NCBI GenBank assembly: GCA_000320545.1
Contig: ADNK01000984.1
Coordinates: 1 to 35,099 of the forward strand
Direction: 5' to 3'
Origin: Bigelowiella natans CCMP2755
Taxonomy: Eukaryota > Protista > Cercozoa
DNA: 35,099 nucleotides
Part shown: positions 1-35,099 of the stretch, piece after piece
Numbering within the stretch: position 1 is the first letter of the stretch
Layout of the letters: every line of letters begins with the position of its first letter
Notes under the pieces: generated by a model
Databases searched by the model: none
Told to the model about the DNA's origin: nothing
Seen by the model: the letters and a program-made list of their open reading frames with translations, nothing else
Position numbers and translations under genes: made by a program

Positions 1-300
1 GTCGGTGACCGCCGCTGCTGCTAATGCCGGCTTCTGCGTGTCTTTCCCATCCTTCGCAGTGGAGGTTGGTGGTGGCGGCGAGGCTTGCTTCTCCGACGGC
101 TGCAGCACAGCACGAACTCCACCTGCCACGACGGGAGCGATGATAGGCCCTCTCATCGGTAGTTGCTGCTGCTGCCGCTGCCGCTGCCGCTGGTGGTGAT
201 GATGGATAGCAGCGACGTGCGCAGCTGCGGCCGCGGCCGCAGCTGCCTTCTTGCCAGTACCCCCCTTCTTCATGGCGGTGTCACATGCATGGAGAAGGGC
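1..300 (-). CDS. Internal exon of a low-complexity host protein (partial, runs off window start)
   Basis: Minus-strand acceptor ...ccgcaatcctcag| at 301, then an open frame ALLHACDTAMKKGGTGKKAAAAAAAAHVAAIHHHHQRQRQRQQQQLPMRGP...AAAAVTD to position 1. No upstream exon is visible. Confidence 0.55.
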
Positions 301-418
301 CTGAGGATTGCGGTGATAATAGGGACGGAAGGAGGGGGGGGGGGGATTTGGTACTTTTCTCGTCGCCACGAAGACGCTGAAAATTAAAAGAGTCCGTGTA
401 ACTAAATGGTACCACACA

Positions 419-2362
419 GTGTTTAAGTTTCCTTCGCTGAAGAGAAACAAAGTTAGTGATTCGGCTTTGGCGTACCTTTATCCAGAAGGTCCTGCCGACG
501 CGGACGCCCCCGAACCATCCAGTGCAACTGACGAGTCGCCAGAGGATGGTGGGCCTGAAACAAAAGCAAAAAGTAAGCCTCGAAGGTCGAATAGAGAAAA
601 TAGGGGAGTACCTGGTATTCGTTACGGAATACTTGGTAGCTATTACGACCGCCTGATGAATATAAAAGCTCCATCAGTACATGAGATCGAGGACCTTCCT
701 AAGACGTATGACGATGCAATCACAGGAGATGATAAGAAGCATTGGATACCTTCTACGGAAGAGGAACTGCACCAGCTTCGAAAACTTGGAACGTTTACGC
801 TGGTAGTGCGACCTAAGGATACAAATTTCGTTACATCTAAATGGGTATTCAAGAAGAAAATAAATGTAGACTATACCATTCGGTATAAGTCAAGGCTGGT
901 CGCGCGAGGGTTCACGCAGATCCCGGGAGAAGACTCCTTCTTCTCTTATTCCCCGACGTTGTCCCTAAATAGTTTTCGGATAATGTTAGCCATAGCATCT
1001 ATCCTCAAGCTAAAACTACACGGGATAGATATACTTACAGCTTTCCTAACTGGAAAGATGGACTGTAAAGTATACATGGAAATACCTAAAGGGTGGAAGC
1101 CGAAGACACCTGATGAAATCCGGCTATACAACAGTGGCCTTCCACTAGCCCTACTGGTAAATAAAAGCATTTATGGGCTGACACAAGCAAGTGCAATATT
1201 CAGCCTTACCTTGCTCGAGCATCTCAACGCCATTGGCTTCGTCCAGCTTTACTCCGATCCTTGCCTAATGATAATGCACAGACAAGGAAGAATCATCATA
1301 TTGTCATGTTTCGTGGATGACATATGCATAGCATATCAAGATAAGAAAGACCTGGACTTTGTCATGAAGCGAATAGGCGACAAGTTTGAGTTTCGCGATG
1401 AAGGCGAGCTAAAGAAAACACTGGGCATAAGAGTTGGTAGCGACAATGAGGGAAACTATTGGATATCGCAGGAAGATTACCTCACCAGACTCGCCCAGAA
1501 GTATGATATCACGCCTACGAAAAGAGCAAAAACACCAATGATAACAGGATCAAAGTTAGACGAATACGTGGAACATGAAAAAGTAGATCAGAAGGCATAC
1601 AGATCCATCATAGGAGCAGCAATGTATGCAGCGGTGGCTACTAGGCCAGACATCTGCTACACTCTATCTCGTCTAGCTTCCTACAGTCAAGATCCTAGAA
1701 CTATACACTACATCGCTGCAGTGCGCTTACTACAATATCTGGTCAACACAAAGGACAAAAGAATTACCTTTAAAGCAGCGTCCAAACCTGAGCTTAAAGC
1801 CTACGTCGATGCTTCCTGGAAGACCTGCAAGAAAACGGGTAAATCATATTCAGGATATTTCATATCGCTAAGCAACGCACCTGTTGTCTGGAAGAGCAAC
1901 AAGCAAAAGGTCGTTGCTATGTCCAGTGGCGAGGCTGAGTACATAGCATTATCAGATATATGCAGAGAGTTAGTGTATGTCACTCAGTTACTACAGGAGT
2001 TAAAAATGAAAATACCGAACCCTGTACCTGTGTATTGTGACTCTCAAGCAGCTATCTCCATTGCAGCCAAGCCTGGATTCACACAGAAAGGCAAGAACAT
2101 AAGGATAGAATATCACAATGTTCGTGATAACTATCAAACCAAGCAGATCTGCATAAACAAAATACCTGGGGAGGACAATCCCGCTGATATACTTACCAAG
2201 GCTCTACCAGGACCTAGCAACAAGAAACACTGTGATTTCTTGTTCCCTATATCATACAGAGAAAAACTAACCATCATGCTACAAGGCACCAGAAAAAGAA
2301 AAATAACAACAAAGGCTCTACCTTACAAGCTCCCTCGCCTTGTCGGCCCCACGTCCGCTTAG
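419..2362 (+). CDS. pol: Copia pol fragment: post-integrase linker, RVT_2 reverse transcriptase, Ty1/copia RNase H
   Basis: RT motifs SKWVFKKK, RYKSRLVARGFTQ, DILTAFL, KSIYGLTQA, FVDD and TRPDI. RNase H acidic residues in YVDASW, SSGEAEY, YCDSQAA and NPADILTK. No stops or frameshifts. The annotated GTG start is not a true start. Confidence 0.97.
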   Translation: MFKFPSLKRNKVSDSALAYLYPEGPADADAPEPSSATDESPEDGGPETKAKSKPRRSNRENRGVPGIRYGILGSYYDRLMNIKAPSVHEIEDLPKTYDDAITGDDKKHWIPSTEEELHQLRKLGTFTLVVRPKDTNFVTSKWVFKKKINVDYTIRYKSRLVARGFTQIPGEDSFFSYSPTLSLNSFRIMLAIASILKLKLHGIDILTAFLTGKMDCKVYMEIPKGWKPKTPDEIRLYNSGLPLALLVNKSIYGLTQASAIFSLTLLEHLNAIGFVQLYSDPCLMIMHRQGRIIILSCFVDDICIAYQDKKDLDFVMKRIGDKFEFRDEGELKKTLGIRVGSDNEGNYWISQEDYLTRLAQKYDITPTKRAKTPMITGSKLDEYVEHEKVDQKAYRSIIGAAMYAAVATRPDICYTLSRLASYSQDPRTIHYIAAVRLLQYLVNTKDKRITFKAASKPELKAYVDASWKTCKKTGKSYSGYFISLSNAPVVWKSNKQKVVAMSSGEAEYIALSDICRELVYVTQLLQELKMKIPNPVPVYCDSQAAISIAAKPGFTQKGKNIRIEYHNVRDNYQTKQICINKIPGEDNPADILTKALPGPSNKKHCDFLFPISYREKLTIMLQGTRKRKITTKALPYKLPRLVGPTSA

Positions 2363-2595
2363 ACGCCCTATAAAAGCCCCACGTCCATCTAGAAACCTAC
2401 AACATATGAACATATAGGCTGCAAGGTTTTAATGGCACACATCTTTATATGTGTGTACCTTTCCTTGCGTATCTTACTATGGACTATATGCACAGCTATG
2501 TGCACAGCTCCGATGGGGGCGAATGTAAATTACGCTATGGATTATATAATTGCACAGTGTCTGTCTTCCAGACACTGCACAATCATGGGGGCGAA

Positions 2596-2916
2596 TGTGG
2601 AACAAAGACAGGATACCTACAAAACAAGAACAAGATATAAGGCTATATACTACGAGATACCTACGAAATTAAAAATAAATAAGACAGAAAAAAACTGCCT
2701 TCCCTGTGTGGAGGTGTGGAAGAACAATGTCGCTATGACCAGAGTATGATGCCTTCAGACCCACGAAGGCAGACTGTATTCTCTTCGGCATTCCTTCTCG
2801 ATCTGGCATGGCTGCAACCCAGCCAGCCAACAGTATTTGGAGCCCAGCCCGCAATTTCGTCTCTCAGGGAAGAGCTCCATTGGGGGACGTGGACGTGTAC
2901 GTAGCTCGCCTCATCA
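2596..2916 (+). repeat. Probable 3' LTR (TG...CA), preceded by PPT at 2585-2595
   Basis: TG immediately follows ATGGGGGCGAA. TATAA near 2636, AATAAA near 2674, ends ...CTCATCA. With no 5' LTR in the window the ends are unconfirmed, and 2524 is an alternative start. Confidence 0.5.
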
Positions 2917-3003
2917 CAAGAGGTGGGGCAAGGTGAAGAGTTAAAAGCACGGTCGATCGAAGTTCCTAAATTTGGGGACCTGACTATGGGAAACCAGATC
3001 GGT

Positions 3004-3086
3004 GTTCCAGAATGTTCCAGAATGTTCCAGAATGTTCCAGAATGTTTTCTGGAAGCACGTGAGGGATTCCAGAATTTTTTCTGGAA
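3004..3086. promoter_or_regulatory. Short HSE-like array: (GTTCCAGAAT)x4 plus three further TTCnnGAA units
   Basis: Read directly. Matches the alternating nTTCn/nGAAn HSF consensus. Function untested. Confidence 0.5.
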
Positions 3087-3091
3087 GCACA

Positions 3092-3846
3092 CTGGTGTCG
3101 TTTAAAAAATTAATTTTTTGGACAAGTCCCAGTTCGTACCGAAATGGTGGCACCTTGCCCAGTCAGGCAAGAATTTTTCCTGCCGATTTCGGAGTGCACC
3201 ATGCCCATGGCACCTTGCCCAGTTGCAAGCCTGGGAATTTTGTGCCTCTGCACAGAGTTTCAGGCGTCTGGTGGTGCGATGTTTGGTCGGCAAAATTTTG
3301 CCAACCATTCGGACTCCGAAACCTTTGGGAATGGCGTCCATGTGCAGCACCGTGCAAAAGTTCTGTCACCATGGCAGAAATGGCACGTGCACATCAGCAC
3401 TCTGATCGTGGTCACCACGTCCATGGGGGCGTGTCAGCGGTCTGGCCGCGCCACCCACGATCAAGGAGCTGTCGCAGCATGCGCACGTCCACTCGTGCTG
3501 CACGCTGCGCTGCGCACATGCGCATGGAAGTTCTCAGAACTTCGGGAATCTTCGAGAAGCTTCGAGAATCTTCCAGAAGCTTCGAGAACATTCCGGAAGA
3601 TTCGAGAATCTTCCAGAATCTTCGAGAGCATTCCGGAAGCTTCGAGAATCTTCCAGAGAATTCGAGAGAATTCTGGAAGATTCGAGAATCTTCGCGAATG
3701 CGCCGGAACCCAATGCGCACATGCATGCAGCGCAAGTCACAAGTCATCAAAGAATTCAAACGCACACAGGACCGCGTGTTGACACTCAGTGACATCAGCA
3801 CAGTCCCGCGCACAAAAGCTAAGCAGCTACCGCAAGCCCGCTAAAA
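3092..3846 (+). repeat. Left copy of a long inverted repeat (TIR-like; true end probably further left, about 2917-2925)
   Basis: Reverse complement of 34401-35099. Near-identical in the outer part and more diverged over the inner ~110 bp. Confidence 0.95.
3541..3700. promoter_or_regulatory. Phased heat-shock-element-like array of 16 x 10 bp TTCnnGAAnn
   Basis: Sixteen consecutive in-register decamers: 13 perfect TTCnnGAA and 3 TTCnnGAG. Confidence 0.65.
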
Positions 3847-4189
3847 GGCAATGTGAGCAATTGCACAATTGCAACGGACGCGTGACAGCGATGTGTGGCT
3901 TGATCAACCCGGCGGCGTGCACGCACGTGCACTGCGCAATTTGCATGCATTGCTCAATCGGTCCTGCTGCCGTGCACAATGCTGATCATACGGTCTCCAG
4001 CACATCGTTTGACTGTGGACACTCAGCGCTGGCTGGCTCCAGGGCTGGCTGAAGTGACTTTCATGCATGGTGGACGTTGTCATCACGTGCACGTGTTTTT
4101 GCGCGTGCGTGCATATGTGGGGACTTGTGTCCCCACAACGATGGTCCATGGTCGGATGATCCAAAGGAGCACCCACAACGCTTTGGTGA

Positions 4190-4980
4190 ACAATGGACAA
4201 TCAATGAGCAACAGAATGAACAATGATGACGAACTGCACGCCCAAAGGCATTGGTTTTGAAGGTCTGAACAATGAGCAACGAAGAACGTGACAAACTGCG
4301 TTTGCAGTGCACGAAATGCAGTGCCTCGAACTGATCTGAGTGAATGATGAGGATCGTTGGATCTCACAATGAACAATGAACAATGATGATGAACTGCATT
4401 TCCAAAGTGTTGCAAGACACTTGCAGTGTGCGAAACGCAGCGCCTCGAACTGACTTCAGTGAGGACCAACTGAACAATGAACAATGAACAACGATGAAAA
4501 ACCACGTTTCCAAAGTGTGACAAGACACTTGCAATGAGAACAATGAGAACAATGATGAAAAATCACATTTCCAAAGTGTGACAAGACGTTTGCAGCGTGC
4601 GAAGTGCAGTGCCTCGAACTGGCTTCAGTGAGGACTGACTGGCAAGCTTATGATGTGCGAAACACAGTGCCTCGAACTGGCAATGAACAATGAACAATGA
4701 ACAATGATGAAAAACTGCACCTCCAAAGTGTGACAGGACACTTGCAACGTGCGAAGTGCAGTGCCTCGTGAGGACTGACTGGCAAACTAGCTAGCTAGCG
4801 GGGTTCGTGCAAATTGGCACGAACTGAAAATTGAATGCATCACAACTGACAGCTAAGTGACGACGACGCAAAGCATCCATCCTCAGCAAGAACTTCCTGA
4901 CATGACAGCCACGTCCACACGGAGATCAACGTTGGGGACAGCCACTGTCTTCAGTGAGGACTGACTAGCAAACTACCGGT
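4190..4980. repeat. Degenerate subterminal tandem repeats (unit about 110-140 bp, with an AACAATG sub-repeat)
   Basis: Recurring blocks aacaatgaacaatgatga, tccaaagtgtgacaagacacttgca, gcagtgcctcgaactg and cttcagtgaggactgact in about 5 full or partial copies. Confidence 0.85.
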
Positions 4981-5063
4981 AGTGAACCAGCAAGGTTTTT
5001 TCACATTGTTCAATTCTTGCAGGTCGCACAACAAAAAACACACATCTTCTTATTTTTCATTGA

Positions 5064-7004
5064 ATGCAGTCAATTATTGATCAACGTCAATATTCTCACC
5101 AAGTCGCATTTTCGAAATTGTCATTGCAACAACCGCCGCAACAAACAGTACAGCACATCGCACCGACCGCCGCCCCACTCATGGGGCAAGTTCGGCCGTT
5201 CTGGATGCGTAGGGCTGGGGTGGGTTTGTGCATTTTTGGGGCCTTGTTGATGGCCTCGTCCTCGATGGATTACAAGTTGGAACGAAGTGGAAGTTTCCTG
5301 TTCGCGACACGATGCGGCAGAAGAAGCAGTGTGGACGATGATGGCGGCATCATGAGATGTGGTTTACAGAAACATCGTTTCAATATGCTGAGGGGAGGCA
5401 GAGTTCCGGATGACAATGGATCAGAGATTGTATATGGGAGTGAAGATAAGGGTGATGATGAGGGTGCTGGTGACGACTACGACATGCACAACTGTGATGA
5501 AGGTGATGGTGATGCTTATGAGGGGGACGGAATGGCGGGGGAGTATGTAGATACAAATCCTCCCAAAGACCGAAACGGCAGGAATCAGAGAGCGTATAAT
5601 GACGAAGATGAAGCTCACATAGAAGTGGAGGAAGAAGATTGGACAGATAAGCAAGGTGGAAGAGACGATGGTGAAGGAACTTCTCGTCGCAGACCAAACT
5701 ATGCAAATGAGGCAGCAGGAGAAGAAAGAGAAGATTCTTCTACTAGACCATCCTCTCAGTATCACCAACGGAGAGGAAGTCGGCTAGGTGGTGGGCAACA
5801 GCAACGGCGACAATGGGTTTCTCGAGGAGGAGGAGGAGGAGGAGGAGGAGGAGGAGGAGGGGCTGTTAGTGGCACCAATCGCTGGGGCGGTGGATATAAA
5901 AATAGACGAGGAAAGTTCATGTATAGGCGCATGAGAAGAAATGCACAGCCACCTAGAATCAGGACGAGACCACCAATGAAAAGAAGAATACCAGGGGTAT
6001 ATAATATTTTTTTTTTCCGTATTATCATCGTGATACACTTTTTATGATAGTTAGAGCTTTTTGGATGATTAATTGTAAAGGGCAGCAATACGAAGAGCTT
6101 TTTGGATGATTATTTATAAAGGGCAGCAATACGAATAATGATGCTTCATCAGGTTTCTTCGTATCTAGATCCATCCATAACAAAAGAAGTTTTAAAGAAT
6201 AGGAAAGCTCAGATAGATGCAAGGTATCAACCTGATTCGTTTTGTTTCCTTGCAAACATCATAGAAATACGAAATTGTCTAAGAGACACGGGAGAAAGAG
6301 AGAGATAAGTGAAATCAATGCACAATTGAAGCATCAGTTGTGATAGCACACATCCTGCAAATAGTAATGGAATCCATTAGTTTGCCTTACAGTAGACAGA
6401 GAATGTTTTTCGAAAATATTACTGGTCTGGCCATAATATCGGTTTAATTTGTTCAGGGCTGCCAAAATTGAGGCAGAGATGATGCAACTGAAAGCTGAAA
6501 TGCTAAACAAAACAGAGGAAATTTTGAAATTGAAGGTTACTCTTTTACCTTAATACGAATCAAAGCACTTACTAATTTTGTTCCAGGGTATTAAACTGAG
6601 ACTTATTGGAGATCCCGTTGCTGCACATATCGCTGAACTCAAGCAACAAGAAAAGGTGATGATTGATGATCTACTTATTTACGGTGCCATGGAATGGAAG
6701 CGTTGCCTTCCCCCGCAATCATAAGAGGATATGATTCATGATAAAGTTGACGATATTAAATACTAATTATAGTAAGTCATCAATCTCTTTGGGTAACACC
6801 ATTTTATTACCTTAGGATGCCGTTGGGTCAAAAGATTATTTAACAGCACATAAATTGCAGAAGGAAATCAAAGAACTTGAACAAAAACATATGAAAACTT
6901 CTCCAATTCAACACTCTCATGCCAATTCTTCAGCAACTTCCTTTCCAAAAGATGTTTCAGCTGAGAATCAAGTGGCCCCTGTAGAGGCAGAAATGCTCAC
7001 ATAA
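5064..7004 (+). CDS. Spliced gene: hydrophobic leader plus MLRGG, acidic and RG-rich disordered region, coiled coil with a UVR (UvrB/C)-like motif
   Basis: Phase-consistent exons at about 5064/5181-5996, 6153-6223 (VSSYLDPSITKEVLKNRKAQIDAR), 6457-6535, 6588-6655 and 6817-7004. The last two join as IAELKQQEK|DAVGSKDYLTAHKLQKEIKELE. Stop TAA at 7002-7004. Confidence 0.75.
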
Positions 7005-34400: not shown

Positions 34401-35099
34401 TTTTAGCGGACTAGCGGTAGCTGTTTGGCTTTTGTGCGCGGGACTGTGCTGTTGATGTTGGAAAGTCAACACGCGGTCTCGTGTGCTTTTGGATTCTGAT
34501 GATGACTTGTGACTTGCGCTGCACGCATGTGCGCATTGGGTTCCGGCGCATTCGCGAAGATTCTCGAATCTTCCAGAATTCTCTCGAATTCTCTCGAGTG
34601 TTTCTGGAAGGTTCTCGAAGCTTCCGGAATGTTCTCGAAGATTCTGGAAGTTCTGAGAACTTCCATGCGCATGTGCGCAGCGCAGCGTGCAGCACGAGTG
34701 GACGTGCGCATGCTGCGACAGCTCCTTGATCGTGGGTGGCGCGGCCAGACCGCTGACACGCCCCCATGGACGTGGTGACCACGATCAGAGTGCTGATGTG
34801 CACGTGCCATTTCTGCCATGGTGACAGAACTTTTGCACGGTGCTGCACATGGACGCCATTCCCAAAGGTTTCGGAGTCCGAATGGTTGGCAATGTTTTGC
34901 CGACCAAACATCGCACCACCAGACGCCCAAAAACTCTGTGCAGAGGCACAAAATTCCCAGGCTTGCAACTGGGCAAGGTGCCATGGGCATGGTGCACTCC
35001 GAAATCGGCAGGAAAAATTCTTGCCTGACTGGCAAGGTGCCACCATTTCGGTACGAACTGGGACTTGTCCAAAAATTAATTTTTTTTGAACGACACCAG
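34401..35099 (-). repeat. Right copy of the long inverted repeat (cut off by the window end)
   Basis: Reverse complement matches 3092-3846. It is about 56 bp shorter, mainly because it has fewer decamer units. Confidence 0.95.
34551..34650. promoter_or_regulatory. HSE-like TTCnnGAA array in the right repeat (about 10 units, one 1-bp register shift)
   Basis: ttcgcgaaga ttctcgaatc ttccagaatt ctctcgaatt ctctcgagtg t ttctggaagg ttctcgaagc ttccggaatg ttctcgaaga ttctggaag. Confidence 0.6.

Follow-up and report, generated by a model that had tools for sequence, protein, structure and literature searches.

Ty1/copia copies in the window and their family in the genome

The window, that is, the whole stretch of 35,099 nt that was analyzed, contains parts of two Ty1/copia retrotransposons, one on its left side and one at its right end (Table 1). 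The left copy corresponds to positions 3012–6515 of the 6515-bp full element (99.9% identity over 3504 nt, blastn) and has a 3′ long terminal repeat (LTR) only. Its coding remainder is 100% identical to residues 809–1480 of the 1480-aa polyprotein of the family. The DNA at 1–344, located 5′ of the left copy, is unique and has a G-run at the junction; RNA depth is low at 1–303, as unique sequence would look. The run itself (13 G at 332–344) separates unique DNA from the truncated copia fragment and may be either the real truncation point or an assembly artefact. The LTR termini are TG...AG/AA and not TG...CA. Comparison of LTR contexts revealed a conserved GGTTATGAGCCTCAAGAGG directly after the 5′ LTR, where a primer-binding site would lie, and a short G-run before the 3′ LTR; in the left copy this G-run (3425–3429) may be the polypurine tract.

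Table 1. Features of the window and of the full-length family member, with the evidence for each.
Feature	Position	Strand	Evidence and remarks
Ty1/copia copy, subfamily A, 5′-truncated	345..3847	+	blastn vs full copy L033:1439-7953
Pol remainder (reverse transcriptase + RNase H part)	419..2362	+	Pfam RVT_2, E=1.7e-45
Antisense intron region	402..2737	-	at least 14 GT..AG introns, 56-253 nt; contig joints in 4 runs of 4 studies
Internal 3′ non-coding region	2363..3431	+	1070 nt; 5′/3′ LTR context alignment
Array #2	3003..3086	.	TGTTCCAGAA x4.4 at 3003-3046, TTCnnGAA phase perfect; degenerate tail to 3086
3′ LTR	3432..3847	+	416 bp, TGTCAGCGG...CCGCTAAAAG; direct repeats on sibling copies
Heat-shock-element array #1	3526..3699		U3-like upstream part of LTR; letters, Tandem Repeats Finder, unit parsing
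Second copia insertion, subfamily B, 3′ part	34401..35099	-	87% identity to element positions 5759-6514
Heat-shock-element array of subfamily-B LTR	34550..34664	.	115 nt, two phased blocks
Domains of the 1480-aa frame (residues)	Retrotran_gag_2 105-223; Pol_BBD 374-457; rve 608-703; RVT_2 958-1208		Pfam

The genome (91.4 Mb) was searched for further copies. The 750-bp repeat was found many times, and many contigs contained two same-strand copies located about 6.1 or 6.7 kb apart. Counting with an anchor next to the array gave 65 LTRs and 19 same-strand LTR pairs genome-wide. Sibling copies have 416-bp direct repeats spaced 6.1 kb apart in subfamily A and 6.7 kb apart in subfamily B. In the full copy L033, the 416-bp direct repeats enclose a 1480-aa frame with the domain order of Ty1/copia elements (gag, protease barrel, integrase, RVT_2); the rve match (28.8 bits) lies under the Pfam cut-off of 32.6. 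Target-site duplications of 5 bp were found on four full copies (CGCTG, AAGTC, GTGAC and TGGTG), the LTR pairs of these four copies differ by 0–1 bases, and many copies of the family retain an open 1480-aa frame with 98–100% identity. The number of LTRs and LTR pairs, the nearly identical LTRs within pairs and the target-site duplications allow us to consider the family young, and it looks recently active. No heat-shock element (HSE) is present in the LTR of a distantly related copia lineage from this genome (reverse transcriptase 45% identical).

The right insertion belongs to subfamily B. Its LTR occupies 34401–34758 (358 bp), and the internal region extends to the contig end, where the copy is cut. 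The LTR pairs of this subfamily are 6.73–6.74 kb apart (contigs C319, C1145, C1239, C1810, C2162, C2862, C3477 and others) versus 6.10 kb in subfamily A, although the LTR is 58 bp shorter; subfamily B must therefore have about 0.7 kb of extra internal sequence.

A search of the whole window against Rfam revealed no family. Tri- and dinucleotide microsatellites are very abundant in the region 5000–34300, and about 90 of the 105 tandem-repeat rows of the window are located there. In addition, a separate dispersed repeat of about 260 bp was found at 4370–4945. A first look gave 669 candidate copies, and dozens of contigs have copies of about 80% identity. The dispersed repeat includes (CAATGAA)n and a tandem duplication of 61 bp, and it is transcribed (depth 100–700), with odd back-joints in the RNA contigs.

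Phased arrays of heat-shock elements inside the element

Array #1 was detected by Tandem Repeats Finder with a period of 10 (16.5 copies, 3536–3699) and also with periods of 20 and 40, the 40-bp higher-order repeat having an 89% match. Parsing from position 3541 divided the segment 3541–3700 into 16 TTCnnGAAnn units, in which TTC is present in 16 of 16 and GAA in 13 of 16, the other three having GAG. The spacers vary, so that 13 of the 16 decamers are distinct. The same segment can be read as 32 nGAAn units, 29 of them perfect, in 5-bp phase; with an HSE defined as at least three contiguous inverted units, the array qualifies, and 22 perfect three-unit HSEs were found within 160 bp when overlapping ones were counted. 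The initial annotation had described 16 consecutive decamers with fixed TTC and GAA (13 perfect, three with GAG) and about 32 alternating nGAAn pentamers at this place, and the letters, Tandem Repeats Finder and unit parsing all confirmed this description, including an exact 5-bp phase. Three extra pentamers with shifted spacing (3527–3540) are located 5′ of the regular units.

Array #1 is part of the LTR of a Ty1/copia retrotransposon. It occupies LTR positions 95–268 of 416, and 148 bp of the LTR remain downstream. The base after TTC is mostly G, and half of the pentamers are therefore CGAA, a flank that is not known to be preferred by animal or yeast heat-shock factor (HSF). A CCAAT motif is located at 3710–3714, 11 bp past the array and within the LTR. 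It may be due to chance; CCAAT together with HSEs in one LTR is reminiscent of HSP70-type promoters.

Two other readings of the array were considered and rejected. As for protein coding, the open frames 3002–3844 and 3144–3782 contain no Pfam family, the period of 10 nt is not divisible by three, and the 59-nt difference found in subfamily B breaks the frame. As for nucleosome positioning or bent DNA, the AA/TT steps recur every 5 bp and not every 10 bp, so that by reasoning alone the bends would cancel.

A second array had been noted in the initial annotation at 3004–3086, and array #2 was indeed found there, with phased units followed by a degenerate tail. It is located within the element but outside the LTR and contains 8–9 phased pentamers. 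In subfamily A it consists of 3–4 units, and subfamily B does not have it. In the low-copy lineage C, whose protein is 86% identical, array #2 is TTCCAGAACG x3, with the spacer changed in every unit and the cores kept.

The LTR arrays of the three lineages also differ. The array includes 16 units in lineage A, 10–11 units in two blocks in lineage B and about 17 units, several of them with broken cores, in lineage C, and at least 10 perfect phased pentamers are retained in each of the three. The mirror array that had been placed at 34551–34650 belongs to lineage B. It is real, but it is shorter than array #1, and between its two blocks the phase is broken by 1 nt and one core reads CTC.

HSF-type sites, chaperone genes of the host and RNA of the copia family

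Two HSF-type genes were found in the genome, one of them on contig C1696. The better-matching one retains the recognition helix SFVRNLNMYGF and is similar to the DNA-binding domains of human HSF1, HSF2 and HSF4 (E=1e-18 to 1e-21). In order to compare the LTR motif with that of the host, the 1.2 kb upstream of 19 HSP70, HSP20 and HSP90 genes were scanned against a background of 110 kb. This background pooled the central 30 kb of the window, host DNA flanking transposon insertions and, from the chaperone loci themselves, coding and downstream sequence. HSE-like sites with one mismatch occurred at 1.54/kb upstream of the chaperone genes vs 0.35/kb in the background (P about 1e-12), an enrichment that is seen only in the one-mismatch scan. 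Clusters of several pentamers were found eight times upstream of chaperones and once in the background. A perfect three-unit HSE within 1.2 kb upstream was found at none of the HSP70 or HSP90 genes and at three of the 11 small-HSP genes. Several small-HSP genes have 4–6 phased units, for example TTCGGGACAGTTCTGGAATGTTCCCGAA. Judging from these sequences, the motif of the LTR appears to be the one that the alga uses at its own heat-shock genes.

A similar cluster of 4–6 units of the type TTCTGGAATGxTCCCGAA is found at four small-HSP genes, namely those at loci L057 (C1679), L060 (C688), L058 (C1597) and L061 (C977). The clusters are located about 720–870 bp upstream of the alpha-crystallin domain and are likely the native heat-shock promoters of the alga.

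The genome scan bore out the expectation that HSEs are enriched in this repeat family. Runs of six pentamers were found 383 times vs 0 in the reversed control, and all the places listed belong to the copia family. Runs of four pentamers were found 612 times vs 5 in the control, with 46 of 50 among the places listed belonging to the family. About 90% of the perfect four-unit HSEs of the genome are thus located in the copia family, and about 50 four-pentamer sites lie outside it in the host, which is about ten times the number expected by chance.

Transcription was evaluated using RNA contigs from four runs of four studies without known heat treatment, and the part of the window at 1–6000 was compared. 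The records do not label these runs as RNA, but at least 14 joints skip GT..AG introns on the minus strand, and the runs therefore represent RNA. All these introns, which are antisense to pol, are GT..AG on that strand and have pyrimidine-rich 3′ ends. The exons of the antisense RNA extend rightward to at least 3032, and in one run the spliced antisense form had about 20 times the depth of the unspliced contig over the same place. The antisense RNA must therefore start on the right side of 3032, either close to array #2 or within the LTR.

The word depth was hundreds to tens of thousands for the copia family vs 13–86 for the neighbouring gene; this value sums all copies and both strands and is no measure of expression. 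Array #1 itself is present in RNA contigs (3514–3684). Some contigs continue past the end of the LTR into the putative primer-binding region, with a loose end at 3848, and low-depth contigs span the LTR into the flank of the locus (3819–4333). The family is transcribed without known heat treatment, and its transcription is not confined to heat. These data are neutral with respect to heat induction, being neither for nor against it. Much of the RNA of the family is antisense and spliced, so that promoter activity of the LTR on the sense strand is putative.

Proposed function of the array and comparison with known systems

The phased array in the U3-like part of the LTR is probably an HSF-binding module, either an enhancer or a promoter, which would recruit the HSF of the host. 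An HSF trimer occupies three adjacent pentamers, and about 32 pentamers would therefore give room for about 10 adjacent trimers. According to the proposed mechanism, binding of host HSF to the LTR array would drive transcription of the element, with a transcription start placed downstream of array #1, and heat or proteotoxic stress would boost this transcription in an ONSEN-like manner. The array may have grown as units of 10, 20 and 40 bp were duplicated, and the copies with intact cores would be the ones that multiplied. Counting against this reading are the CGAA flank in half of the pentamers, the scarcity of perfect three-unit HSEs at host chaperone genes and the RNA of the family in studies without known heat treatment.

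Another possibility is that the enhancer is bound by a non-HSF factor, or constitutively by HSF, and provides steady two-way expression with no heat switch. The good representation of the family in the RNA of four studies without known heat is consistent with this, as are the symmetry of the array and the abundant antisense RNA that starts right of 3032, on the array side. TTCnnGAA half-sites also resemble the sites of STAT-type factors. However, STAT sites have the form TTCN3-4GAA, unlike the array with its 2-nt spacing, and this spacing together with the strict 5-bp alternation over 32 units fits HSF. In addition, the enrichment of the phased motif upstream of host chaperones ties it to the heat-shock regulon. 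We therefore consider such an enhancer unlikely, though not far-fetched.

The array could also be a neutral minisatellite, in which a 10-bp TTCnnGAAnn unit that arose by chance was expanded by slippage and has no binding function. The 40-bp higher-order repeat indicates that a part of the array was recently duplicated, and the array length varies among subfamilies (174, 125 and 115 nt). Neutral decay, however, is expected to be equal in cores and spacers, whereas deviations from the column majority in array #1 were found at 3 of 96 core positions and 27 of 64 spacer positions (Fisher P=4.6e-10). The units are not independent, as part of the array arose by a recent duplication of 40 bp; the contrast is large nonetheless, and it was unchanged when the 13 distinct units alone were used. 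The comparison between lineages A and C gave substitutions of 2.2% in cores, 6.8% in spacers and 5.6% in the rest of the LTR, a difference that is not significant (P=0.21–0.25) and to that extent agrees with neutrality; copies within a subfamily are 98–100% identical, which leaves a test of core conservation across them with no power. The initial annotation had taken the fixed cores as suggesting selection for binding. The contrast of cores and spacers is statistically strong within the array, but between lineages it does not reach significance: cores changed less than spacers between A and C, and the broken cores of lineage C are to be set against a strict conservation. Against slippage alone also stand array #2, which has a different unit with the same cores and phase, and the identity of the motif with the one upstream of host chaperones. 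A neutral origin of the whole array is thus rather improbable.

A structural role, namely a long hairpin in the RNA or cDNA that serves in packaging, dimerisation or as a source of small RNA, is very unlikely. The single-strand fold has an energy of −42.7 kcal/mol (z=−4.6 vs shuffles), and the match between the array and its reverse complement is 73%. Such self-complementarity, however, follows automatically from the TTC/GAA cores. Complementarity of the spacers is 23–48% in the best registers vs 24% by chance, being close to chance in most of them, without a consistent compensatory design, and in subfamily B, where the array is 59 nt shorter, most of the predicted stem is lost.

Practically out of the question is the reading of the two arrays as terminal inverted repeats (TIRs) of one large mobile unit, or as transposase-binding sites, around 31 kb of genes: the arms (3159–3749 and 34500–35032) are complementary at 96–100% in blocks, but each is the 3′ internal region and 3′ LTR of a copia element, the subfamilies differ (LTRs 80% identical with gaps counted; arrays of 174 vs 115 nt), the arm sequence elsewhere in the genome forms direct repeats around a gag-pol frame, and a transposase is not involved. 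The TIR-like repeat of the initial annotation is accordingly replaced by two copia insertions of different subfamilies. The suggestion of a single mobile enhancer on either side of the enclosed genes falls with it, since the arms are two independent, tail-to-tail insertions and not the bounds of one element. The facing 3′ LTRs are a coincidence of these insertions, and nothing ties the intervening 31 kb to the elements. As a lesson for annotation, inverted repeats at contig ends may be simply two insertions of LTR elements.

An HSF-binding module in the LTR would have known counterparts. HSEs in the LTRs of ONSEN and its relatives confer heat induction (PMC3907296, PMC5059998), and the analogy with ONSEN drawn in the initial annotation is apt. 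The array is transposon-borne, perfectly phased and of the HSE type. ONSEN/COPIA78, TERESTRA and COPIA37 of the Brassicaceae are likewise Ty1/copia elements with HSF sites in the LTR that form young multi-copy families. The HSF site of the ONSEN group originated by duplication of a proto-element, and ONSEN contains four adjacent nGAAn units and TERESTRA up to six (PMC3907296, PMC5059998). The present element differs in having about 32 units in one phased run and a second array inside the element. For ONSEN, the heat response and HSF binding have been demonstrated, while the present family is known from its sequence. The host is a rhizarian alga, which means that the HSEs were acquired independently of the Brassicaceae.

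Independent acquisition of HSEs has also been described for Ty3/Mdg4 and copia LTRs of Macrostomum lignano, in which mutation of the HSE abolishes the heat response (PMC12801592). Those LTRs have 1–4 three-unit HSEs each, in comparison with 22 in the present LTR by the same overlapping count. In Caenorhabditis, one family of Helitrons holds a large share of the HSEs of the genome; dense clusters are found only there, and they are bound by HSF-1 according to ChIP (PMC6927752). A Helitron is, however, a rolling-circle DNA transposon and not an LTR element, and HSF-1 ChIP there stands against sequence evidence here. HSF1 is also recruited to the (GGAAT)n arrays of human satellite III, which are transcribed during stress (PMC2241877, PMC7889540). 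They resemble the present array in being long tandem arrays rich in GAA-type pentamers, but they are megabase-sized and pericentromeric, are not a mobile-element promoter and do not follow a strict alternating TTCnnGAA phase. The principle of HSE-bearing mobile elements is thus known. New are the lineage of the host, the separate origin and the array itself, which is extreme and exactly phased. This array is far longer than those reported for the LTR elements above; no such claim is made with regard to the Helitron clusters.

The family might also act as a genome-wide sink for HSF that sets the heat-shock threshold, with symmetric arrays that would fire both ways and yield genomic and antisense RNA in a self-limiting circuit. 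This idea builds on the 65 LTRs with room for about 7–10 HSF trimers each, on the share of about nine-tenths of the strong sites and on the two HSF genes; we regard it as quite improbable.

To our knowledge, validation of retrotransposons that use HSF sites and so escape silencing under stress is limited to Brassicaceae and one flatworm, and Caenorhabditis offers a parallel among DNA transposons. If the proposed function is true, the independent case of a chlorarachniophyte would add a third eukaryotic supergroup, Rhizaria, to those with this convergent strategy, and with about 32 phased units vs 4–6 it would mark the upper extreme. As a transcribed and apparently recently active family, it offers a practical system for asking whether array length tunes the heat response. 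A second question that can be addressed with this copia family is whether owning most of the HSF sites of the genome feeds back on the stress response of the host.
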